A stretch of 64,000 nt of DNA from Chlorokybus atmophyticus (lineage: Eukaryota; Plantae; Mesostigma and Chlorokybus algae), in the NCBI GenBank assembly GCA_009103225.1, contig RHPI01000026.1, forward strand, positions 815,103 to 879,102, given 5' to 3'. Within the stretch, counting starts at the first letter, position 1; each line of letters begins with the position of its first letter. Of this stretch, positions 15,386 through 50,025 are shown piece after piece. The notes under the pieces are model-generated. The model had not been told where the DNA came from, did not search any database, and saw nothing but the letters and a program-made list of their open reading frames with translations. The translations under genes and the position numbers were made by a program.

Positions 15386-16339
15386 AGTGAGCAGGGCAGG
15401 AGCTACACTGCAGCTTGAGCCGCCATTTCCATTGGACTTGATGGCAGAGTGTGTAGGCAGAGTAGAGATATTGCACGGGCATGCACAATCCGTATGCGTG
15501 TATGTAGGCACAGAAGTTGAGATTGCAGTGGCCTGCAGAATGTGTATGCCAGCACATGCGTCACTCCTACACGCAGTGCCACCACTGAGCATACAAGCAA
15601 GCCATGTACATGTACATGACATCGTGGTGACACTACCAACCACGCCAACAGCTCAGCACAGATAATTAGCATTGTGAACAGCAAGCACATGTAAAAAAGC
15701 AACAATTACGTGTGCACGAAAGAGACGATGTGAAATGCAATATCAAGCACATCGCATTAGAACGCTTCCACACGTACCCGCAGTGTAAATGTTGAAGTGG
15801 ATTTGGCACTGACATGCAGAATGCGCAGATGCACAGGCTTTCCAATAGTTCCAATGCAGGTGACACCCACACACGCGTGCGCACAGAGTGAAAAAACAGC
15901 AAGAGGAATGAGGCGCTAGGGATTACAACCACTCACACAGCCTTACGGCGCAAGCCCAAAACAGGCGCGCTCAGGTAGCATGTGACTCATCCAGGGCTGT
16001 CACACTTCCCACAAGCACACACAATAGCGTACACAACAATAGGGACAGCCACACAATTCAAACAAGCGGCAGGGGCGACTATGCTTAATATATGCATGCA
16101 CATGTATCACTTCCGCACTGAGCATACGACCAACCTATGTATAAACCAAACAACCAAAGTACGAATCAACCCATTTGGCAACCATCCTAGTAACAACGCA
16201 TTAAAACTACAAACGCTAGCCAAACCCACAAGACAACTTGTGACATCCACATTTGCATGCAAACACATGTTTGTGCACGCAGTGAGCATCAACAGCAAGC
16301 GCACTCCATGCTTCTACGCAAATAAATTCTCATGAAAGA

Positions 16340-17950
16340 AAAAGATAAATAGATGTATAAGATTGAGCTTCTACAAGTTGTAGCTTACCCCCTCCCCCCT
16401 TTTAATATAGTTCTTGACTTATACAAACATCAATCATCAACGATACATACCATCTTCACATTTTCGGTGTCACACCGAAAATGTGAAAATGTTATGTCAC
16501 AACGGTTTTGTTAAGTTGATGAACGTTAAGCGTCGACTTAATAATGTGCACGACAATCATTAACAAGTGGTACAATTTTATAAAGTTTGAATATGCGACA
16601 TACTTCGGTGCACCATCATAAACTGTGTTAAGAATTAAATATATATGATTCTTGACATCGTAATCACTGTTTAGCGTGGCAGTCTTGTATTCGACCATGG
16701 TGGGTTGATATGCCATTATAAGGTGACATGAGCAATAAATTTGCAAGGTAAGTTGTACAACATCTCAAACCCTCGTTACATTGCAACTCTCTCTCTATAT
16801 ATATACATGACTTTTGTTGCTTTTGTATAAGCGGGAAAATCATACCATGTAACATAATAACAATTAACGATTAACGATTCTCCAGCCATAACTTATCATA
16901 CATATTGCGTCAAAGTCACTGGAATATTCCATTGTAAAGCAAGTCAGCTGAGACACGCAGTTTGTTTTCAATTGTTGAGGCAACGAAGGGGAGCTCTTTT
17001 TTATTCTTGTGCAATGCTTATGAAAAAATACTAACACAAATAAGTTGCGATTAAGGAGAACAACTTGTCAACTGGTTGCGAGAGACTTTGTTGAAGGGTA
17101 TTTTTGTCGTAGATATGTCCACATTTGCACGTAAGCTACTACTGCTACGCCTCAAGCATTTGCACGCTATATCCATATTGTTGAACTTTTGGCTATTTGA
17201 TCAAATAGTTATGTTTGCAAGAGCTGTCATAGCCCACTCGATTATAAAAGACTTGGTGCTTTTATAGTCGATTTGTGATTACTTAGTGTACCTTCCAGTT
17301 ACAATAGTGGTACAACTGAACATGTAGAATACTATTACACGACCCGATAGGTTTTACAAACATTATTAATGCGCTCACCATCATCGCAGTATTGTGAACT
17401 TGGCATGGCACTTGATAACTTTAGCGGCAATCCCCCCGTTGACGACGAGATGTAAGGAAGCTTGCAAAGCACACAAATACATGGTATTAGCTACATACGT
17501 GCAATAAAAAAAAATGGGACTCAAGACCCGTTTGTCGACTTGAAAAATTTTATAAGTAAAACATTACATTGTTTTCATGTTTTGCTCATAACCATATCAT
17601 CAACAATTGTTAACATGCTGAGATATTTTGTGTCGACATTCCGAGTTTGGTGGTTCAAAAAACCAACAAGAAGTTGATGTAACCTACTTTCTCATTGTTG
17701 CTAATGTGAAACACAAGGGCAAGTAGTAACATGTGACATAGGTTTGTCCATTAAATCATGCTGTTTACATTATACAAAGCCATAGCTTGTCTGCATAATC
17801 AGTATTTGCATTTTATTATATTTACATGGGTTTCATTCTTTTTTAACTACATCACAATGTCACATCGTAGAAATGTGCAAAGTGCTTTGTGAATTGAAGA
17901 GAGGTTTCAAACAGAAAGCCCCGTTTCAAACTTGATTTGGCATTATGTGA
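16340..17950. other. AT-rich ORF-poor intergenic block between APC2 and the CRAL-TRIO gene, possibly a decayed transposon
   Basis: Visibly more AT-rich than its flanks, no long ORF, and a 16-bp perfect hairpin at 16455-16487. No convincing transposase motif was recognised. Confidence 0.3.
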
Positions 17951-18916
17951 ACATTGAGAGTGTGAAATGGACTGCACTCAGGGACCGTGAGTAAGGGTTC
18001 AGAGTTGCTTCAAGCCAGTCAGCTCAAGAACATGGGGAAGTTCCACCGCCTGAACGTTTCTCCATAAGGAAATGTTTGCACGCACTTGGCATGCTGACCC
18101 TTGGTTGTCTTGCCTTTTTGAGGCCTCGCCCCAATAGGCAACTTCCGTAGGCACACATGGCCAAAAAGGCGCGACACGTGACGTGGCCATGCCAGCCAGG
18201 CCCAGAAGTGGCAAACAGGTCCGTCACAACCGTGTCAACTCCACCGACCCACAAAACAAGGCGCCGTTTCGGTTGGTAGACTTTGCCGCGCATATGCTGA
18301 TGATGTGCTGACGCTAACCGCCGTCGGTTGCCATTTCGGACATTTGCTGACGGCAAGCCAGTCACGGTGTGAGTCACACCTGTCACCTGCTGCAAAACTG
18401 TCAAACAAGGCTCCGGTCAAGCGCCGATTGGGAAGCCAGGCGCTTAACGGTGTTCTTCTCCCCCTTGGCGGTGTTTGGCATGGTTACGGTATCTTCCGGA
18501 AGCCATTGCGATACCGTTGTTGCGAGATGCTTGCCCAAAACGCATGCATATGCTGATGCATATGCTCATGCCTTGCGCGTATGCTGAGGTGGCGGCGGTG
18601 GCGTTAGCGAGGTGGCTGGCGACGGTGGTGGGGTGGGCGGCAGCATGGCCTTCTGGTTGAGGTGAGTGTCCGCACACCTGCTTGTTTGCTGAGACATTCG
18701 TAGCATTGGGTCTGAGTGAGTGGTCCTGTCTGCGTGTGTGTGCTGCAGACAGCCGGTGGTTGCTGGTGCCAGCAGGCGGCGGCGGCAGCAGGGTTGAGCT
18801 GGGCAGCAGCATGGCATGGCTGCAGCTGGATGCTGGTTGATACCAGAAGTTGTGAAGAAAGTACACCAGCTTGCAGCGAGTGTGTTTGAAGCTGGTTGAG
18901 AACTCCAGCTGTAACG

Positions 18917-21076
18917 ATGGAGAGGAGGACAGTGCCCCCCCTCGCTGCTTATGTGCGGCAAGCTGCTGTGCCAGCTGGTGGAGGCGCTGCTGCCTCAATT
19001 GCTGCGTCCGCACTGCTCATGGCGCAGGCCGTCACAGTGATCAATGCTTCCAAGTCTAAGGGGGAGGGCGCGATGCTGCCGGTTCTGCGCACTTTATGCG
19101 TGCTTGGCCTGCCCCGCATGAAGTTCTTGCTGGCTGGTCCGCTTCGCCCACTCAGCGCACCCCTGCAGGTAACCACACATGAGTGTAAATCGTGCAATTC
19201 GCGAATGGCGTGCTTGTAAACAACCATTGATGTGTACTGTTGTAACATTGTCGTACAAAGCCAGCTAGCCTTGCTTAGATCTCCCGTTGACCAACCGTTC
19301 TGGTGCTAGTTGTGTCAATATCAGTGCCACAGTCAAGTTCTCTTTCAAGGTTACCTTTGTAGCTGATAGCAGTAGGCCGGCAACATTAACACCATCACCA
19401 GCACACGCTTGAATCAGAAACTGGATGAGAGATTGTGTAGAAAGTTGTCTCCAACGTTTGCTGTGTGATTGTTGAGCTGCATATGTGTGCCCATCTGCCT
19501 ACTTGCAAAGTTTACACACACGTGTTTGTTATGTCAGCCCATCGACTGCCTCACATCGCTACATGTTGAATTAGGCATGGGTGAGTCACTTGACAGTGTT
19601 TACAATGCAGGTTGCTGCGGGTCCACTAATGGTGCTCTCAGTCGCTGGGCCTCTGGTTGCATGCGTGCGAGGATGGGTGGTTCGTAAGAGAAAAGCGGTC
19701 TTGGCCGACGTTCAGGATGAAACTGCCTGTGTGGAAACACCACTGCAAACTGAGCCTTTTGGAAGGTGAGCCTTTAACATATCCAGCTGGGTCTGTTTGT
19801 CGAGCACAGAATACTGTGCGTAGCAGTGACTGCCAACATGTGATCCGCGGCTTCTGTCATGTTGGTTGTTGGTGCTGCATTGGTCTCTGCTTTGATTGAC
19901 ACAGTCCTAGGGCAGACAGAGTATGTGTGCTTGAGCTGATGATTCTGTGGCTTCACCACAGTTCCATTGCAAATCCAAGTGAGGGAGATCTGCGCAAGCT
20001 TGCAGACGTCAAAGCAGCACTTTCAGCTGCAGACGTACCAGTCCCGCAACCGTAAGCACTGTTGCAACCCTACAAACGATGCCTGTGTGCCGAATACCAA
20101 TGCTGCTTCCACCTGCATGCGCGTCCAAGTGGTAACAGCAATTAGTGCATTGATCCCTTGCACGACTGCACAGGCTGAATGACGGGCACATACTACGCTA
20201 TGTTCGAGTTCTTGGCACTGCAGAGGCAGCCACCACTGCATTTCGCAACCATCTGAATTGGAGAGCCAACTACACTTTTGCTTCCAAAGAGTTAATGCAC
20301 AAGTTTGATGACTTGGTCTTCTGGCACAAGCAAGACAAGTATGGGCGTCCGTGCTTGGTTGTGCGGATGGGCGCAGCTTTGCCTGTCATCCGGAAGGACC
20401 GTGCAGTGATTCCAATGCTAGTGGATGTGATAGGTAACAGTCAACTCCTGCTGTGCATTGTAGTCTGTTTGCTTCACGCTGTGCACTGCGTGCGTGTGTG
20501 CACGCTTATTAATTGACCTGTTGACCAGTATACCAACATCAGCATTGTGCTGCAGTGGCGCAAATGGAGTTTGCGACGCGCCACCTGCTTCAGGACGGTA
20601 GGGCGGAGCAGATTGCGGTAGTGCTGGACGTGGAGGGTATAGGCTTGACGAGTGTACCAATACACATGATCAAGCACATGGTGGGAGTGTTGGGCCGCAA
20701 CTACCCGTTGCGCCTTGGGGTGTTCTACATTGTCAGAGCGCCCATGTCTGTCAATTTTGTTTTAGCGGCATTGAAGAGCATCCTTCACCCCGTCACAAGG
20801 GAGAAGATCAGTGTGGCTGGCAGGAACTGCGCACCCGAGCTGATGCGGCATTTTGACGAGGCTGATCTGTCTCGGTTTTTTGGCGGCAGCTGCAAATGCA
20901 GCGTATGTGTCCCTGAAGAGGCCCTTCCCGCACACCAACAACTCACTATTCGTAAGGGCGCGGCGCCCTCTGTCATGCGATGGCCGATTGGCAGTCAAAG
21001 CTGGCCTGGGCGCTACCTGATGACGCTGGTATTCTTTGTAATTATCATGGTTTCTGCGGGTTTTGCGCAGCTGTAG
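18917..21076 (+). CDS. SEC14/CRAL-TRIO lipid-binding protein with a C-terminal hydrophobic anchor (start codon uncertain)
   Basis: LNDGHILRYVRV...HLNWRANY; FWHKQDKYGRPCLVVR; VVLDVEGIGL...LGRNYPLRLGVFYIVRAP...KSILHPVTREKI; ends RYLMTLVFFVIIMVSAGFAQL*. Confidence 0.85.
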
Positions 21077-21804
21077 GCTGGGCAGCAGTATTGTACAGAC
21101 ATGCATTCCTACTTTTTGATTCATTACTGGGTAATTGAAGATTAGGTCTCATTGGTTAGTGTTAGTTTGTGTCCCTGATTGTGCATCATAGCACTGGTGT
21201 CAAGTGGTAATACCAATACACCGTTACTTGTCAGTCTAGCGCAGTGTCGGGTGCGTCATGATTGGTTTTTATGCACACAGTGTTTACCACCAGTTGCCCG
21301 TTGTATTGCCCTTGGGTAAGTGCAGTGGAAATGCTTGTGCTGAATCTTGTAGCAATCAGGCAGCAACATCGGCAACACGTACATGCTGTCAACTGAACCG
21401 AATGAGGCAGGAGCAGCTTGCGCCAGTAAAGCATTGGCACAAGAACACATTTCTCTGTACATAAACTGGGGAGTGGAATGGCCCATGCATGTGCTTGCAG
21501 CCTTCAGCATTTCAGTACTTGAAGTTAGTAGTATTATAAAAACAAAGTATATGCTCAGCTTTGACACGGCAACCATGCATGGTGGTTTCCATTTGTGCAC
21601 TGAACGCACGTAACACTCTTCAGTTTCATGTTATGCATGGCAAGTACAGGTGGATGACACATGCACAGCATTGCGTATTTTCTACACAGCACACTTGCAC
21701 TGCCACATGATATCCAATACAGTTGCGATGTGCACCAAACAGCGCTACATGTTGTAGCACAAGCATTTGCGTGCACGGACGGTTACCCTCAGTGATGACG
21801 CCTG

Positions 21805-24800
21805 TCACCTCTGTAAGTGATTCACGTGCAGCGCTGCCACTGTCGCATCACTTTCATCGCTGTTATGACTGGCTGACATAAAAGTACTATTCGGTTGCTT
21901 GCAACTGCATGTCATGCAGACAATTAGATTTTGTAACATGCCTATGCATTGATAGTAGCGCAGCTTGTAAACACAAGTGCCTGACCAGCAGGCTGCTTCA
22001 ACTAGAGCAGCAGGCATGGACAGCAGCAATGGTACCTTCAGCGATGGTATTTTCTTGTGTGCAAAGACGTGGTGAGCGTACTGTACAGCGCTATGCGCTG
22101 TTACCAGTGCGGGATCTGAACAGGAAAGTGCCTTGTTTTGCAAACTGACATGCGAGTTTTTGCCACACAAACATGTCGCACCTGCACATATAGCACTCGC
22201 ACCTGTGGTGGCCTGTGGCCGAAAAACTGCGGCGGATGTTTTTTGCTCTTTTTGTGTCTTTCTTTCCTTTTCCCGACTCCATTCACCGGAGGCGCATACT
22301 CAGGCAAAAGGTGTTCTGCTCTCCTTTTGCCAAGGATGCTGGTGACCACCTGCATGGCCTCATGACCTCCTGTACCAATAATTGCAAAGTCAAGTGAACC
22401 ATGGTACAGCCAAGCGTGCAACAACCACGTTCTGCACGCAAGAGAGGTAGCATGCTAACCTGCTTGTAGTTTGACTCGTTGTGTCGCGCACTCTGCTACC
22501 TGTGCATCTAAGTGCGCCAGTCGGCTCTCATAGTCTTGTATCAGCGCAGCCTGGGCAACGAGACACGTTGCATAAGAGTTGCTAACTGCAACTGACTACA
22601 ATACAAACACAACCATACTCAAGTATACATATAGATTTCGACGACAATGTCTCGTACAGCCTTGCAGTTACACGATCACACCAAGCTGTAGCAATCGCAG
22701 CACTTGGCAAACACACCTGAGCACACACAACCATGCCTAACCCAACACGCCAAACGATGTGCTTTTTGCTTGCCTTGCGCTCTCCAAGCTCGGCTAGTTG
22801 GCGCTCAATGGTTTGCAGGGCAACAGACGCATCACTTCCAGATCCTGAAGGCTCTGCCAAGTAAATGTGGTGGACAGTGAGCTCAGTTGCAACCCACGGG
22901 CACAAGCACGACATGTGTTGCACACGTGGTGCATACCTGAAGCGTACAAGTGACCGGATAGGAGGTGGCCTTCATTCCTCGCTCGCACGGCATCGATGGC
23001 GACCGCAACATCTTCGGTTGAGGCGGGCTGCAAATCGCCGTGCGGCACGCAGCCGCCTTCCAAGAAAGCGATGGCTTGCAGCGACGCATTCTGCTCTGCT
23101 TCCTGAGTTGGATGAAGCAAGGCTTCGCCAACAGAGCTGCATGTGCATGCAACTACACACCGCTGGTGGGAGTACAGTACCTTTGCGTTGGTGTAGTAAC
23201 CCTGCGGGGTGATGGCGAAGTAATCGCGGTGCGGAAGGATGCAGTTGGCGGTGAACACGCCAGGGCATGGGGAGGTCTTTATGAACACGGGTTGCGGGAC
23301 CTGCGACCACCACCAGTATGAGCACGTGTTAGAAAAACAGCTTGCTGACGCGTTGGCTGGCTGCTGCCATGTGTATGATGCTTGTCTAATGTGTTCACCT
23401 TGTTCTGTTGGCACCATTCGTGTAGGTGGGACTTTGGTGTTTTGCCCTTCCAGGTGCCAGGGGTATACCTACACAGCACACTGTTGGTGCACTTCCAATG
23501 CAGCAAGCACAACTTGCGAAACGTTACACAACAGGGCACAACCAAGCAACTCACACAAATGGCGATTGCGGCGGTGGGTGCAAAGCAAGCAGCTCGGCCG
23601 CATTCGGTCCGCTCGGCTTAACAACTGCAGCTGCTGTTGCCATAGCGTTTGCAGCACCAGCCTCCAGCGGTGCGGCATTTGGGTCAATAACTGCAGCGAG
23701 CTTCTCGGGCGTGTCCAGTCCCAACTGCTCTGCATTGCTGCAAGTGCAACAACAACACCAAAGTGAGTGTTTTCTTCACCTGCTCCTGTGCCAACAGCAT
23801 CAACACAAGGTTCAAGTCATCTTCGCACACACACCTGCTTATCCATGAGACAAGGCTTTGTGCAAAAGGACGCACACACGCGAAGTCCACATACTGCCGG
23901 CCAAGGAGGTCCTCTGGCTTAGTGTGTGCATGTTCAGGCGGTGAGCACGCGGCCAGGATGGTGTGTAATGATACCCACCGGCCTGGTGAGTCTCCGTCAT
24001 CTGGAGGATTGCCCTTGGCCATGAAGACATACACTCTCGCAGCGGGTACGCCTTCAAGTACACCAACGACAGTGTTGGAAACCGTGAAGGCTGTCGACGT
24101 GTCCGCTGCCAGCAGGTCTTCGGCATTGGCAGTCACCTGCGCTAACGTCCATGCCAGTGTCTGCAGCTGCTGATCATCACCTGCAAGTACCCAACAAATC
24201 CTCACTTAGCTTACTCTCAAATGTCAACACGCTGTTCCGACGGCCCAACAACATGGCTTCACCCAGAGACGCACACACGCATGTGCACACGCGCACGCGC
24301 ATGCACATGCTCCCACACGAACGCATGCACACAAGCGCACGCACGCCACATCAACACGCCATAGCACAATGCCATGCAAATAACAAGTTGCAACGGTAAC
24401 TTTACCTGTTTTGCCACTTGAGTCCAAGGGCAGAGACCATCCGCAAGGCGCCGAGCCTCCCCAAACCAGCAAGCATTGTGAGAAGTCTTGGGACAGGATG
24501 ATGCCGCTCGCTGATGTGTGCTCGAGTTGGGTAACTACTGGAGAAGCCAAGCGCTGCGCCACGTCGGTGGCGAGTGGCACGAGCTTTGGTCGCAGCCGAC
24601 ATGCGGCAGCCCATAGCTGCTCTGCCGTCACCGGGTCAAGCAGAGGGAACGACTCGCACACAAACGTCTTGAAAAACCACTCTGCAATGCGGATCTGCAA
24701 GTGCATTTTCGCTCTGTGAGCAACAATTGCTGTCATAGTGGTGCAACTTTGACAAGCGCACAATGCGACCAACAAGGCATCATCATCATCATCATCATCA

Positions 24801-25709
24801 AGGGCATGCTTCTGTGTGAGGAGCAGTACATTGTACTGCTTTGAAATCAGAAGCATGCCCTTGAGTCATCAACTGCAGTAGCTTTGCATTGTGGTTGCAG
24901 ACAATGCAGGCTCTATGCACTAAAGCTTTACCTGCATAAACCCATGAACAAGCAGAATGCTGTACTGAGCAGCACATCCGACGGTACTGCTTCACACGCT
25001 GAAGCATGCCCCTGATGACTAAACAACGCCTTCGTACATCTATCAACAAGCAGTTGTGCAAGTAGTTATTCATGATGAGGACACCATGCTTGAGAGCATG
25101 TAAAGTCCTGAAGCGTTGCATTCATTCTAGCTCTAGCTCTAGCTCTTCCTTGCCAAAACATATTACTATATGTACCGTTTGTCAGTGAGCTGTGCATGCA
25201 TGGTGGTCGCATGCACAGCGGACTGACTCCTATGTGCATGGCATCCTACCACTCATATACTCCTTGCACCTGCAACTTGCCCATTACAAAGCAGCAAGCG
25301 CAGAAGCCTTAGAACTCGTTGCATTGCTTGCATACCCTAGGCACCTCTGCAAGCATTGCAACCAGTGTGCATATAGCAGGAGCAACAATAGAGCACAACA
25401 TGCGGAAGCCTGTTTTCCATGTAAGATGCGCACCTGCTTGACAAGCAGCTGCTTCAGCTGCTGCTGCTTGTCAGAATTCTCCCCCTCCTCCTCCTGCTGG
25501 TCATCCACCAGGGGGTCCAGGAAGCGAGCGACCAGCTGCTCCGCCAGCCGCGGCACCTGCAGATGCTCCGCCACTACGGTGCCACCGACGACAACCTCCT
25601 CAGCCCTTGCACCCTTCACCTCCCCCTCCTCCTTAGCCTGCTCCTGCTCCAGCTCCTGCGCTTCCCCCTCCTCCTTCTCCACCACCGCCGCCGCCCTCTG
25701 CTCCGCCAT
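21805..25709 (-). CDS. Dcp2-like protein (Box A plus degenerate Nudix fold) fused to a double-stranded RNA-binding domain and a coiled coil; 3' end uncertain
   Basis: IRIAEWFFKTFVCESFPLLDPVT (Box A-like); SGIILSQDFSQCLLVWGG..GWSLP and VRPFAQSLVSWI match remembered Dcp2 segments GAIILDETYERCLLVKGW..SWSFP and VAPFLSSLKSWI. Spliced KTPKSHLHEWCQQNK-VPQPVF...FTANCILP...NAK-EAEQNASLQAIAFL is a dsRBD pattern. Confidence 0.7.
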
Positions 25710-45572: not shown

Positions 45573-48500
45573 ATGGGTCAGGAGGACTACTATTCGGTTC
45601 TGGGGTTGCAGAGGAAGGCCACTACCGAGCAAATACATGAAGCGTAAGTACGGAAGCAACAGAAGTATGGATGATGAACACTATGCAGTCTCTTTCTTTC
45701 TCTCTGTCTTCCTCTCCCTCGCCCGCGCGCGCCAACCCTCATTTGTGTGTCTGCAAGAGTGCGCGCGCATATCTGTGCATGTATATGCGCTTGTATATGT
45801 GTCTCTCTATGTATGAGTAACTCCAACGGACTTTTGCAGACGTAAGAATGCACACGATTACACGCACACGCGCACGCGCGTACGAGTGTGCCCAAGGGTA
45901 CATCCGCTCGCACACGTCCATCGCTCACCCGTGTACACACACACACACACACACACACATACACACACACACACACACTTACCCCTTCCAGTTACCGCTG
46001 GCTTGCCCTGAAGCACCATCCTGACCGCCAGCCCCCCGCGCGTCCCAACGACAACGATGACAGCAGCACCGGGCAGGACCGCTTCGAGGCGATCTCCACT
46101 GCGTACCAAGTGCTGTGCCAGGGTGAGGGATGGGGATTGGAGCTGGGTGGGGTTGCTTGCTTGTGTTTTGGTTGTGAGGTCGAGGGTGATTGGGTGCTGA
46201 TCGTCTCTGATCTCTCTCAGCGGAGGCAAAGGCTGCGTATGATAGCGGGGGTGAGAGGGAATTGCGCGAGTGGGCAGGTACGCACATGACGACCATGATG
46301 CACTGATGAATGAGTTACCGATATTGTGTACGTGTGCACATGTGCGCACGATTACGCGATTGCACATGCGAGTGCATGTACAATTTGCATACTTGCACAA
46401 CTCGCATGTGAATGTACGCACAGCACACACACGCATGCATGCACACACGCGCGTGCTCACGGTCACCAACACGCACACGCACATCTGGCAAGTGGTTGCC
46501 ATTGATTGATGAGTACTTCTGTGAACAGAAGGCGGGGAAGGGGCCGAGCAGAGGCTGTCGTTAACTCCGCAGCAGGTTTTTGACAAGTTTTTCGGCACCA
46601 GCAACCCATTCCAGGCGTTGGCAGGTGACACAACACACGTACATGCACACGCACACGCACATGCACATGCACGATGATACAACTGTAGTGTGCAAGTTTT
46701 TCATGACACGACAACAATCATGTGGTATGCAGACTACAGTGGCAAGTTCCAGGATATGGCAGCCCCGCCCGCTCTGGCGCCGGGCAAAGAAAAGACGGTG
46801 AGGATTTGTTGCTGACGTGGACACATGGTGAATCACTGGTCTGGTCTGCATGTTGGTTTGAAGACATGCTGTATGTCTAATGATGCATTGCAGTTTGATC
46901 TGCCCTGCACCCTGAAGGAGCTGTACTTTGGCTGCACGAAGCGGGTTCTCAACAAGCGCACAGTAAGAGACATGATATCAACAACATGTTGTTGACACAA
47001 CGACAATCACATTAACAACAATGTGATTATGCTTACGTGCAAGGCATTCATCACCAGAATATCAATTTTCTCCTCAACGCAACTGCATGTGTCTGAGTTA
47101 GCATTGGATGATGTGTGTGAAAGGTGGAGAGCGCGGATGGGCAGATAGAAGAACGAGCAAGCATCCTTCTCATACAGGCATGTTCACGACTCCTCAGCAC
47201 TTGTGCATGTGCATATGCGTGTATGCGTGTGCGTGTATGTCATATCGTTGTGTCTGCCAGGTGCCGCGAGGGGCCCGCGCGGGGACGCGTTTCGTATTCC
47301 GCAACGAGGGTGACCAGCCACGCAACTGTTTGCCAGGCACGCTTACCGACGCGGGCACACATCAAGCAACGTGATCGCATGGTTACCACCTAATCAGCTT
47401 CGTGCCGAGTGTGCTGTGTGTGAGACACAATGCATATAACCTAAACCTCACACAACTGCACAATGGTATACAAGCACACGCACAGATATACATACATGCA
47501 CGCACCCACGCATGGAAGCCTTCCCCCCCGCATGCACATACACAATCACCTGAAACTTCAATGTCCAACACCAGGTGCTGCTGTGTACGTCGTGTCTGAG
47601 TTGGATCACCCGCGCTTCCGTCGTCGCGGGGACGACCTCGAGTACACCGCCCGCGTGGGACTCGTGCATGCACTCTGCGCCACCGCCGTCGTGGACGTGG
47701 TACGCCTATTTACCAGCGTGCGCGTGTACGTGTGAATGTGTGATCTTGTGTGTGCTTGAGTGAGGGTGGNNNNNNNNNNNNNNNNNNNNNNNNNNNNNNN
47801 NNNNNNNNNNNNNNNNNNNNNNNNNNNNNNNNNNNNNNNNNNNNNNNNNNNNNNNNNNNNNNNNNNNNNNNNNNNNNNNNNNNNNNNNNNNNNNNNNNNN
47901 NNNNNNNNNNNNNNNNNNNNNNNNNNNNNNNNNNNNNNNNNNNNNNNNNNNNNNNNNNNNNNNNNNNNNNNNNNNNNNNNNNNNNNNNNNNNNNNNNNNN
48001 NNNNNNNNNNNNNNNNNNNNNNNNNNNNNNNNNNNNNNNNNNNNNNNNNNNNNNNNNNNNNNNNNNNNNNNNNNNNNNNNNNNNNNNNNNNNNNNNNNNN
48101 NNNNNNNNNNNNNNNNNNNNNNNNNNNNNNNNNNNNNNNNNNNNNNNNNNNNNNNNNNNNNNNNNNNNNNNNNNNNNNNNNNNNNNNNNNNNNNNNNNNN
48201 NNNNNNNNNNNNNNNNNNNNNNNNNNNNNNNNNNNNNNNNNNNNNNNNNNNNNNNNNNNNNNNNNNNNNNNNNNNNNNNNNNNNNNNNNNNNNNNNNNNN
48301 NNNNNNNNNNNNNNNNNNNNNNNNNNNNNNNNNNNNNNNNNNNNNNNNNNNNNNNNNNNNNNNNNNNNNNNNNNNNNNNNNNNNNNNNNNNNNNNNNNNN
48401 NNNNNNNNNNNNNNNNNNNNNNNNNNNNNNNNNNNNNNNNNNNNNNNNNNNNNNNNNNNNNNNNNNNNNNNNNNNNNNNNNNNNNNNNNNNNNNNNNNNN

Positions 48501-48982
48501 NNNNNNNNNNNNNNNNNNNNNNNNNNNNNNNNNNNNNNNNNNNNNNNNNNNNNNNNNNNNNNNNNNNNNNNNNNNNNNNNNNNNNNNNNNNNNNNNNNNN
48601 NNNNNNNNNNNNNNNNNNNNNNNNNNNNNNNNNNNNNNNNNNNNNNNNNNNNNNNNNNNNNNNNNNNNNNCCCCCCCCCCCCCCTCCCCACCCACCATCA
48701 TCACACCACCCCTCATCCCCGCGCAGCCCCGGCTTCACCAAGCTCATCCCCAACGAAGGCATGCCCATCCCACTCACCGATAGCAACACCACACCTCAAT
48801 CTGGCTCTCTCCTCATCGTGTTCCACATAATCTTCCCCCCCCGTCCCCCTCCCTCCTCCCTCCACCATCGCGCCCTCGCGGCCGCATTGGCCCTCCCGCC
48901 CCGCCCCGCGCCGGCGCAAGAGAAGGCGGCGGGGGAGTGGGTGAGGGCGTACGAGGCGGAGAACGGGGGGTGGAAGGGGTGA
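45573..48982 (+). CDS. Type II Hsp40/DnaJ protein, DNAJB13/radial-spoke RSP16-like
   Basis: DYYSVLGL..YRWLALKHHPD (HPD motif); QVFDKFFGTSNPFQAL; TLKELYFGCTK; GTRFVFRNEG; HPRFRRRGDDL; EGMP. No Cys zinc finger. The FFGTxNP.AL segment matches my recollection of RSP16. N-gap at 47770-48670. Confidence 0.8.
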
Positions 48983-50025
48983 GGAGCTGTTGTGTTTGTG
49001 CGCATGTACACATCTCAATTTACAACAAGAGGCACGGGCACAGATGCTGGGATAACTTGCGCGCGCGGGTGTGTACAGGGTGCTGTATCGAACATGCTCA
49101 GGGCATGTGTATAACATACGTGATGCACGAAGTTATGACATGCATGGGTCGTGACACATGCAACGCAAGCATCTCACCACACCACCAAGCACTTACACTC
49201 ACCACCGGGATGTCATACCTACTCGCTACCTACCTTCACTACTAGCAATACCCGTTGGACATACAGGCATGCATGCACGCACGTGTAACATACCTGCAGG
49301 CAACGGCGTGGCTAACGTCTCAAACTCAGCAGTTAGCGGGTGCAATCAAAGGCAGGAGGGGCAGCAGCCACAGTGTGTTCGTCTGTGCGTGTGCGTGTGC
49401 ACATGCATTGATGTGCGTGGGCAGAGCGTATGAAGGGGGCAAATTTGAAAGGGGGTATGCTACTATGCCGGCATGCACTGTGTGCTGAGCAAACCAAGTG
49501 ACATTCACCACACCCACGCTCATGACTCATCACATACAACTCACCACCGGGCCAGTACTTAGCACTGTCTCTACTACACTACTTATGCCTGCCCCTGTGG
49601 TGGGCTGTATGTAGATGTAATCTGATTCGGACAGATATAATCAGCAATGCCGCAACGACTGACACACTTGCACGGAGAGACCGACACGTGCAAATGTTAT
49701 AGGTGATGTGCCTCATGCTGCATAGCAAATGTTCCTGCCAGACTGTGCGCACACACCAATGATAACATGTCATTGATGATTCTTGATAAGCTCAGAGTCT
49801 GAGCAACAATGGAGACTCAAATGGGCACGTTGATTATGTCAATGGTTGACTGCCTCCTCTCACTTCCATGAACATAGCTTGCTGGAGGCAAGAACAAGTA
49901 CTTATCCCAAGTGCCACCAACATCATACGCGCAAACCACACCAGCCAAGCCGCACACATCGCCAACATCAAACAGACGTGACCGTTGCATGTATATCACA
50001 ACCCAAACCGCTATCCCAAAATCGA

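Follow-up and report, generated by a model that had tools for sequence, protein, structure and literature searches.

A spliced Chlorokybus atmophyticus gene joins a dsRBD to a candidate non-enzymatic Dcp2-like module

An initial annotation of a locus in the alga Chlorokybus atmophyticus described a relative of the mRNA decapping enzyme Dcp2 that lacks the catalytic glutamates of the Nudix box and is fused to a dsRBD. This raises the question of whether the two parts belong to one expressed protein, whether the first part indeed descends from Dcp2, and what such a protein could do. We analysed a 64,000-nt stretch of contig RHPI01000026.1 (the window), in which the gene lies on the minus strand; all features described below refer to this strand.

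Gene structure and transcript

A frame encoding 600 amino acids extends on the minus strand from 25709 to 22101. Its 11 coding exons, which were first predicted from the sequence, are joined in one 2092-nt spliced RNA contig from sequencing run X1, and each junction was borne out by this contig. All introns are of the GT-AG type except for intron 8, which is GC-AG. The RNA contig ends 12 nt before reaching the ATG start codon (25709-25707), at position 25697; an in-frame stop codon is located upstream at 25784-25782, and the database model P0001 (C. atmophyticus, 583 aa) uses the identical ATG. P0001 corresponds to the RNA-based model minus 17 aa, which were dropped by the choice of a GT donor inside exon 8. 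Our model therefore corrects the public one, which misses the GC-AG intron. Whole-protein searches were performed with P0001, whose numbering is used for the motif positions given below, and the 17 absent residues, encoded by the 3′ portion of exon 8, were covered by a single-exon search.

Exon 11 (22101-22115) consists of the final four codons (IPHW) and a TAA stop (22103-22101). The 3′ UTR (21669-22100) comprises at least 301 nt and contains an intron (22035-21905) whose junction in the RNA contig lies 65 nt downstream of the stop codon; the contig extends 31 nt past position 21700. The gene had initially been placed at 21805-25709, and it is indeed found there, but the coding sequence ends at 22101 and positions 21805-22100 consist of 3′ UTR and the UTR intron.

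The gene model and its single transcript are established by these data. One spliced contig spans both domains across the region 24800-23000, and the proposed fusion of a Dcp2-like part with a dsRBD is thus a single gene with a single in-frame transcript. Two separate genes are ruled out, as both halves are in frame within one RNA contig. Judged from its sequence, the protein would consist of an acidic N-terminus, a Dcp2-like module of about 255 aa, an Ala/Pro-rich linker, the dsRBD, a coiled coil of about six heptads, and an NLS-like patch.

The N-terminal module and its relation to Dcp2

Exon 1 (25434-25709; junction from 25434 to 24694 present in the RNA) encodes an N-terminus rich in Glu (aa 1-48), followed by the first helices (aa 49-92) of a region resembling the N-terminal regulatory domain (NRD) of Dcp2. 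Exon 2 (24406-24694, aa 93-188) contributes the Box A-like helix IRIAEWFFKTF (AEWFF, aa 96-100), the strands GIIL (aa 156-159), CLLV (aa 166-169), and WSLP (aa 178-181), and the first residues of the former Nudix box (GKT; GKTG at aa 186-189). Exon 3 (23835-24180, aa 189-304) encodes the remainder of the Nudix-like domain together with a Box B-like helix, PFAQSLVSWI (aa 293-302). All motifs originally listed as Dcp2-like (Box A, GIIL..CLLV..W.LP, and PF..SL.SWI) are thus present in the sequence in the described order. This order is identical to that of Dcp2 (S. pombe 2A6T, 2QKM, 5J3T, 5KQ1, and 5N2V): a helical N-terminal domain with the Box A helix and the Trp, a hinge, the strands GxIxL, CxLV, and W.xP, a helix at the position of the Nudix box, and the Box B helix PF..L..WI. 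The designation of the protein as a paralog presumes that a canonical DCP2 is present in the same genome.

In contrast to Dcp2, the Chlorokybus protein carries other residues in place of the Arg and every glutamate of the Nudix box. In the register of the phmmer alignment to S. pombe Dcp2, the degenerate box extends from G186 to N207 (24125-24415) and is split by intron 2 (24405-24181). Compared with the consensus GX5EX7REUXEEXG, it contains Q192 for E, T200-L201 for RE, V204-T205 for EE, and N207 for G, so that the position reads GKTGDDQ..TL..VT and retains none of the catalytic glutamates. The aligned residues thus agree with the loss that had been claimed, and the absence of the catalytic residues is established. 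No exon is missing at this position, because the exon 2/3 junction, which lies inside the former Nudix box, was read directly in RNA. Furthermore, the motifs RE[U]xEE and GX5EX7RE are absent from all six reading frames of the window. A hidden exon restoring the Nudix motif is ruled out by these two results.

Several searches point to Dcp2 as the source of the module. Pfam DCP2 box A (PF05026) aligned with aa 86-139 over profile positions 22-75 of 83 (E 0.095, 13.4 bits versus a cut-off of 28); this match was seen with the slice 50-150 only and was absent when the whole protein was scanned. A phmmer search of the PDB aligned aa 83-188 colinearly with residues 28-133 of S. pombe Dcp2 (106 residues, one gap, E 0.28), and a search with exon 2 alone placed the Nudix strands of the same protein on aa 155-182 (E 1.5 among 177,635 sequences). 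Strands 100-133 of S. pombe Dcp2 were aligned at E values of 1.1-1.7, the E values for this protein overall being 0.28-1.7, and aa 280-305 were aligned with residues 215-236, a piece of Box B, in a weak stretch. Besides dsRBD proteins, Dcp2 was the sole biologically plausible family in the PDB lists, in which S. pombe Dcp2 was the only one of the solved Dcp2 proteins to appear. In comparisons of ESM Atlas features, Dcp2 box A/NUDIX clusters occupied ranks 1 and 2 for exon 2, and Dcp2/Nudix clusters made up 14 of the best 30 for aa 40-325 (score 0.94). Single-sequence AlphaFold models were too poor to judge the fold (pLDDT 40.6 for aa 40-325 and 37.7 for aa 149-310). As the signals from separate stretches concur in family, order, and spacing, the N-terminal module of about 255 aa is likely to descend from the Dcp2 catalytic core. 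Dcp2 descent, as claimed, is thus suggested by matches that all remain below threshold: profile searches placed the dsRBD above the Pfam cut-off and the Dcp2 part at 13.4 of the 28 bits needed.

These scores leave room for a different origin, in which the first 300 residues constitute an orphan domain or belong to the DUF7913/DUF7915 group, the likeness to Dcp2 is due to chance or convergence, and the protein is a lineage-specific combination of a dsRBD and a coiled coil. No Dcp2 or Nudix match in the Pfam and PDB searches was significant, Pfam NUDIX (PF00293) gave no match even at E 10, and a PDB search with the NRD slice alone gave none either. The best Pfam match of the N-terminal part was DUF7913 (PF25500; aa 57-135, E 0.023, 15.2 bits versus a cut-off of 27), which outscores DCP2 box A, and a DUF7913/DUF7915 cluster took ESM Atlas rank 1 for aa 40-325 with a score of 0.94, to be read as a lead only; DUF7915 (PF25502) itself was not matched in Pfam. 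The exhaustive search described below, which returned no relative, also fits this reading. Against it, three distinct stretches correspond, in the correct order and at almost equal spacing, to consecutive parts of Dcp2, and, given a Dcp2 hypothesis based on Box A, the match of the Nudix strands has a per-sequence probability of about 1e-5 (E 1.5/177,635 sequences). The share of Dcp2/Nudix clusters among the ESM Atlas neighbors likewise speaks against it. Moreover, DUF7913 and DCP2 box A match identical residues, so that DUF7913 may be a Box A-like domain as well, in which case the orphan-domain reading and Dcp2 descent would coincide. The uncharacterised DUF7913/DUF7915 proteins occur in streptophytes and thus share their broad lineage with Chlorokybus, but the cluster representative has 255 aa and no dsRBD listed; the comparison with this group was made by Pfam profile and ESM Atlas features. 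Taken together, we consider a non-Dcp2 origin rather unlikely.

No relative of the protein was found among 1.84 billion representative proteins, where an exhaustive HMMER search with exon 3 returned only the query itself. Word searches with aa 50-320 and 330-583 retrieved no protein besides the query, and metagenome contigs and loci yielded no relative. The gene is an expressed, lineage-restricted gene of C. atmophyticus. These searches yielded no relatives from which to build a profile or to gauge conservation and selection.

The dsRBD and the C-terminal region

The Dcp2-like module is followed by an Ala/Pro-rich linker encoded by exon 4 (23555-23737, aa 304-365), which matches no Pfam family and is probably disordered according to its composition. 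In Dcp2, the C-terminal tail is disordered and carries HLM motifs; the Chlorokybus protein differs in having a dsRBD, a coiled coil, and an NLS-like patch in place of this tail.

The dsRBD (23064-23437, aa 376-441; LHEW at aa 380-383 and EAEQNASL at aa 429-436) is distributed over exons 5 (23399-23468), 6 (23181-23300), and 7 (22937-23102), whose junctions were found in the RNA. Pfam dsrm (PF00035) matched it over profile positions 1-65 of 66, with an E value of 2.3e-8 (34.9 bits) for the whole protein and 1.3e-9 (39 bits) for the slice, versus a cut-off of 23. The presence of a dsRBD is thus established, as had been claimed. When single exons were used, a 13-residue dsrm match was the only Pfam result, as the domains are split by introns.

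The domain had been likened to those of DEAH helicases. The weaker matches of its slice in the PDB do include DHX29, but the closest ones are the second dsRBD of HEN1 (3htx, E 0.0093), which ranked first, and DUS2; HYL1 was also matched. PF17842 (dsRBD2), which represents the HEN1 family (PMC11260077), reached 26.9 bits with the slice 365-470 (cut-off 25) and 23.5 bits, below the cut-off, with the whole protein, the match covering just the two ends of the 147-position profile. The N-terminal extension SPFVYTPGTWKG is common to the Chlorokybus domain and HEN1 dsRBD2, which spans residues 387-500 in HEN1 and binds small-RNA duplexes there (PMC8473176). Both domains show the pattern.PF.[FY]T..W.G in this extension and A.QNASL.A in the last helix. 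In contrast to the Arabidopsis small-RNA 2′-O-methyltransferase HEN1 (3HTX), the Chlorokybus protein has no methyltransferase, La-motif, or PPIase-like domain, and its dsRBD lacks the long insert that HEN1 dsRBD2 carries between strands. The possibility that the N-terminal module represents the La-motif domain of HEN1 was ruled out, since the HEN1 matches are confined to the dsRBD and the ESM Atlas neighbors of the module are of the Dcp2/Nudix type.

In alignments with HYL1 and DUS2, the position of the GPxH loop reads CPGV and lacks the His, and that of KKxAK at helix 2 reads NAKEAEQ, with one of the three lysines. Because of these replacements, binding of dsRNA by this domain is not assured, and it may be a protein-binding or otherwise atypical dsRBD.

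The coiled coil and the Lys/Arg-rich patch that were annotated C-terminal to the dsRBD are both present. The coiled coil (22460-22853) is encoded by exons 8 (22774-22853) and 9 (22460-22550), which are separated by the GC-AG intron (22773-22551) and joined in the RNA, and comprises about six heptads, assigned by eye, with VALQTIERQLAELGERK from exon 8 and AALIQDYESRLAHLDAQVAECATQRVKLQ from exon 9. The heptad register continues through the exon 8/9 junction. Exon 10 (22203-22369; junctions found in the RNA, no Pfam family) encodes the basic patch KRKERHKKSKK (22239-22271, aa 557-567), which looks like a nuclear localisation signal.

Possible function of the protein

The residues by which Dcp2 contacts the cap (W43, D47, and Y220 in S. 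pombe) and the basic Box B residues that line its RNA channel (PMC8984151) were compared with those of the Chlorokybus protein. The gatekeeper Trp is kept, as W98 is aligned with W43. In the printed alignments, D47 is replaced by T102 and Y220, which lies in a weak stretch, by A289. K230, K231, K234, K235, and R236 of Box B, likewise in a weakly aligned stretch, correspond to V, S, S, S, and N, respectively. With the losses at D47, Y220, and the basic Box B positions, handling of cap or RNA by the Dcp2-like module is unlikely. As read from the alignments, the module has retained core-packing positions and the gatekeeper Trp, and has lost every glutamate of the Nudix box, the Asp and Tyr that contact the cap, and the basic residues of the RNA channel.

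Nudix folds have outlived their catalytic box in other proteins as well. CFIm25/NUDT21, NUDT16L1/TIRR, and the NUDT9-H domain of TRPM2 are Nudix-fold pseudoenzymes that have been reused for the binding of RNA, protein, or ligands. To our knowledge, none of them contains a Dcp2-type Box A domain or a dsRBD, and none gave a sequence match to the Chlorokybus protein. By analogy with CFIm25 and NUDT16L1/TIRR, the Nudix-like module could be a non-hydrolysing reader of a ligand or RNA, which recognises the 5′ end of an RNA or a nucleotide, with the duplex next to it being held by the dsRBD. Retention of the gatekeeper Trp, whose role in Dcp2 has been described (PMC8984151), would fit such a reader, as would the CFIm25 (NUDIX_2) and Nudt16-like clusters among the ESM Atlas neighbors and the resemblance of the dsRBD to the duplex-binding dsRBD2 of HEN1. 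The replacement of D47, Y220, and all five basic Box B residues argues against it, and relatives that might reveal a conserved pocket, or a usable structure model, were not available. We regard a reader function as quite unlikely.

The best explanation, to which we assign an even chance, is a non-enzymatic scaffold of 600 aa that binds duplex RNA and whose N-terminal module most likely derives from Dcp2. In such a scaffold, the inactive module would serve as a protein-binding surface that neither binds nor hydrolyses the cap, the dsRBD would grip structured or duplex RNA or a dsRBD-protein partner, the coiled coil would mediate dimerisation, and the basic patch would direct the protein to the nucleus. 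Its partners and its biological role are what we infer from these features. The Dcp2-like module might conceivably recruit Dcp1 or act in a dominant-negative manner, which at this stage is speculation.

A more far-reaching version of the scaffold reading, for which we see only a slim chance, is that streptophytes possess an unrecognised family of pseudoenzymes derived from Dcp2, which includes the DUF7913/DUF7915 proteins of land plants and, as an algal member with a dsRBD, the protein described here. The core would then still bind Dcp1 or another decay or silencing factor, which the HEN1-type dsRBD would tie to small RNAs or other duplex RNA in the nucleus. If this were true, the fold of the decapping machinery would be linked to dsRNA pathways at the root of the plant lineage, a connection not known before.

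We found no paper on a catalysis-deficient Dcp2-type core that includes Box A, nor on one fused to a dsRBD. If Dcp2 ancestry is true, the Chlorokybus protein would be the first Dcp2 pseudoenzyme and would show, as a natural experiment, what remains of the fold when decapping is given up, the core and the gatekeeper Trp having been kept and the contacts to cap, metal, and RNA lost. The weight of this finding is limited by the lack of a detectable relative beyond one algal genome, by the sub-threshold homology, and by a function that is only deduced.

Finally, the gene might be a young, fast-drifting duplicate or a product of exon shuffling that has little or no selected function and is transcribed on its way to loss. 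The failure to find homologues outside the C. atmophyticus genome and the loss of functional residues from the Nudix-like module as well as the dsRBD would be compatible with this scenario, as would the junction of the 3′ UTR intron 65 nt past the stop codon, which could expose the mRNA to nonsense-mediated decay. In addition, runs X3 and X4, from the same study as X1, contain only short pieces with 95-99% identity. Such a gene is, however, hard to reconcile with an intact frame of 600 codons that runs through 11 exactly spliced exons without a frameshift, with the heptad register kept across the exon 8/9 junction, and with a dsRBD above the Pfam threshold; a contig depth of 119 in a 44-Mb run, a poor measure, points in the same direction. 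We therefore consider a drifting gene very unlikely.

One transcript for the Dcp2-like and dsRBD halves

Eleven coding exons on the minus strand were derived from the sequence and the list of open reading frames: E1 (25709-25434), E2 (24694-24406), E3 (24180-23835), E4 (23737-23555), E5 (23468-23399), E6 (23300-23181), E7 (23102-22937), E8 (22853-22774), E9 (22550-22460), E10 (22369-22203), and E11 (22115-22101). The start ATG lies at 25709-25707, downstream of an in-frame stop at 25784-25782, and the terminator TAA at 22103-22101. A single 2092-nt contig of the public sequencing run X1 joins these exons; it omits exactly the 10 introns predicted between them and an eleventh one located in the 3′ UTR. 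The intron ends are GT-AG throughout, except for intron 8 (22773-22551), which is GC-AG. Although run X1 is labelled RNA only by guess, no source other than RNA explains a contig from which eleven canonically bounded introns are missing. The reading frame is open across every junction (1803 nt, 600 codons). As it is continuous over all junctions of this one contig, an assembly product rather than a long-read cDNA, the Dcp2-like and dsRBD halves belong to one gene and one message, as the initial annotation had proposed; the refuting case named there, transcripts that split the domains between two genes, is contradicted by this contig.

When exon 3 was searched exhaustively with HMMER, one protein matched, P0001 (583 aa), named jgi/Chlat1/7199 in EukProt and thus from Chlorokybus atmophyticus. 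It is identical to the 11-exon model apart from the use of a GT donor inside exon 8, whereas the RNA contig splices from the GC donor at 22773-22772; the public protein is therefore 17 coiled-coil residues short. Whole-protein searches were performed with P0001, whose numbering is used here, whereas the 17 residues that it lacks were covered solely by the search with exon 8, which matched no Pfam family.

Intron 1 contains a (GAT)n microsatellite (24768-24809), which was skipped as a repeat in read mapping, and intron 2 consists mostly of TG/GTGCG-rich low-complexity sequence (24240-24370). The 3′ UTR intron (21905-22035) places an exon junction 65 nt past the stop codon. Under the usual rule for nonsense-mediated decay (NMD), the critical junction lies more than 50-55 nt downstream of the stop; as 65 nt exceeds this distance, the mRNA is a possible NMD target.

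Ancestry and residues of the Dcp2-like half

All Dcp2-core motifs listed in the initial annotation were found in P0001: AEWFF (residues 96-100), GIIL (156-159), CLLV (166-169), WSLP (178-181), GKTG (186-189), and PFAQSLVSWI (293-302). Formal searches gave weak signals. Pfam NUDIX showed no match up to an E value of 10. With the slice 50-150, the Pfam DCP2 box A profile scored 13.4 bits (E 0.095, cut-off 28), aligning residues 86-139 with profile positions 22-75, and DUF7913 gave a nonsignificant E value of 0.023. In phmmer searches of the PDB, exon 2 alone matched the Nudix strands of Schizosaccharomyces pombe Dcp2 (E 1.5), and the whole protein matched the same Dcp2 (E 0.28), residues 83-188 aligning with Dcp2 28-133 with one gap. 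The slice 145-325 again found S. pombe Dcp2 together with a weak colinear stretch at the Box B helix (280-305 to 215-236); the slice of the N-terminal regulatory domain alone had no PDB match. The Dcp2 signals are mutually consistent: they come from separate stretches and point to one family, with its order and spacing kept. In the ESM Atlas, the first two clusters for exon 2 were Dcp2 box A and Dcp2/NUDIX, and 14 of the 30 best clusters for residues 40-325 were Dcp2/NUDIX, at 0.94.

If the Box A hit is used to set the hypothesis, the Nudix-strand match, which is independent of it, would occur with a probability of about 1e-5 per sequence, and on this basis we consider descent of the N-terminal module from the Dcp2 core likely. 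The Dcp2 descent claimed in the initial annotation is in line with the order and spacing of the matches and with the ESM Atlas neighbours, but neither Pfam nor PDB phmmer scores reached significance and a Pfam NUDIX match is absent. Rank 1 in the ESM Atlas for residues 40-325 was a streptophyte DUF7913/DUF7915 cluster, a family on which the full-text literature search returned nothing; an N-terminal half unrelated to Dcp2, either an orphan or a DUF7913-type domain, appears rather unlikely. No homologues were available for an alignment, and AlphaFold was run on the single sequence only. The two models (pLDDT 40.6 and 37.7) show helices, two strands, a helix at the place of the Nudix box, further strands, and finally a long helix at the C-terminus, the order that a Dcp2 core would show, but their confidence is too low to count as fold evidence.

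In the register of the printed alignments, the first G of the Nudix-box consensus GX5EX7REUXEEXG is kept as G186; the first E is replaced by Q192, RE by T200-L201, EE by V204-T205, and the final G by N207. The exon 2/3 junction falls within the former Nudix box and is sequenced in the RNA contig, and neither RE[U]xEE nor GX5EX7RE occurs anywhere in the window in any of its six frames. These results bear out the earlier description of a Nudix box without catalytic glutamates. A hidden exon restoring the box is refuted by the same junction and motif search.

Among the functional residues of Dcp2 (gatekeeper Trp, D47, Y220, and basic Box B; PMC8984151), the gatekeeper is kept (W98, S. pombe W43), D47 and Y220 correspond to T102 and A289, and the five basic Box B residues are V, S, S, S, and N in a weak alignment. 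Judged by these alignments, the fold-defining buried positions are conserved and the contacts to metal, cap, and RNA have been lost.

This pattern is typical of pseudoenzymes that have been retained as scaffolds. It seems quite unlikely that the module, like CFIm25 or TIRR, reads ligands or RNA ends without hydrolysing them. Even less probable is that the gene is a duplicate drifting under weak selection, a reading that the possible NMD trigger would fit.

The dsRBD and flanking regions

Pfam dsrm matched residues 376-441 of P0001 over the whole profile with 34.9 bits (39 on the slice, cut-off 23), confirming a genuine dsRBD. Exon-wise Pfam scans were nearly blank because the domain is divided among exons 5-7. 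PF17842 ('dsRBD2') is the family of the second dsRBD in HEN1, which methylates small RNAs in plants (PMC11260077); in AtHEN1 this domain spans residues 387-500 (PMC8473176). Its profile scored 26.9 bits on the slice (cut-off 25) and 23.5 bits on full-length P0001. Against solved structures, the top match was HEN1 (3HTX, E 0.0093), whose N-terminal extension and last helix both match the slice, followed by DUS2, HYL1 dsRBD1, and DHX29. The earlier assignment to the DEAH-helicase kind was therefore imprecise. Read against the solved-structure alignments, the loop is CPGV instead of GPxH and helix 2 begins NAKEAEQ instead of KKxAK. The RNA-contacting motifs are weak, and the domain may plausibly, but need not, bind dsRNA in the canonical way.

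The coiled coil and Lys/Arg-rich patch reported to follow the dsRBD were recovered as about six heptads in exons 8-9 (22853-22460), their register unbroken over the GC-AG junction, and as the NLS-like KRKERHKKSKK in exon 10. The N-terminus (residues 1-48) is Glu-rich and exon 4 (23737-23555) encodes an Ala/Pro-rich linker. None of these four regions matched a Pfam family.

Relatives, putative role, and neighbourhood

Only the protein itself was found with exon 3 among 1.84 billion cluster representatives (HMMER) and in word searches with residues 50-320 and 330-583 (candidates of 320-1020 aa), and JGI metagenome contigs contained no relatives. Runs X3 and X4, from the same study as X1, yielded only short pieces of 95-99% identity, including a 57-nt contig over the exon 8/9 junction (22522-22801) differing in six letters, which hints at diverged orthologues in sister Chlorokybus strains or species.

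One transcript with a 600-aa frame encodes a genuine dsRBD and lacks the catalytic Nudix residues. The architecture is apparently a Nudix-fold pseudoenzyme of Dcp2 type joined to a HEN1-like dsRBD. Such a protein would be unable to decap, and its old Dcp2 surfaces would probably no longer bind cap or RNA. The coiled coil may dimerise it and the basic patch may mediate nuclear entry, while the dsRBD could bind either duplex RNA or a partner that itself carries a dsRBD and the dead Dcp2 module could offer a protein-binding surface. Binding of Dcp1 by this surface, with a role as 'Dcp1 adaptor', is hypothetical, as is the status of a paralog of canonical DCP2. Nudix-fold pseudoenzymes are a known kind; the Dcp2-type combination with a HEN1-like dsRBD is unusual, and no Dcp2-dsRBD fusion or Dcp2 pseudoenzyme is described in the full-text literature searched. 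The homology is sub-threshold, the gene is restricted to one lineage, and any function is putative.

The last large exon (20555-21076, plus strand) of a CRAL/TRIO (Sec14-like) lipid-transfer gene (PF00650, E 7.9e-21) lies convergent with the gene studied, the 3′ ends being at most ~600 bp apart. The window, with a mean GC content near 0.51, has AT-rich troughs at 16001-18000 (GC 0.376) and 48001-50000 (GC 0.365).
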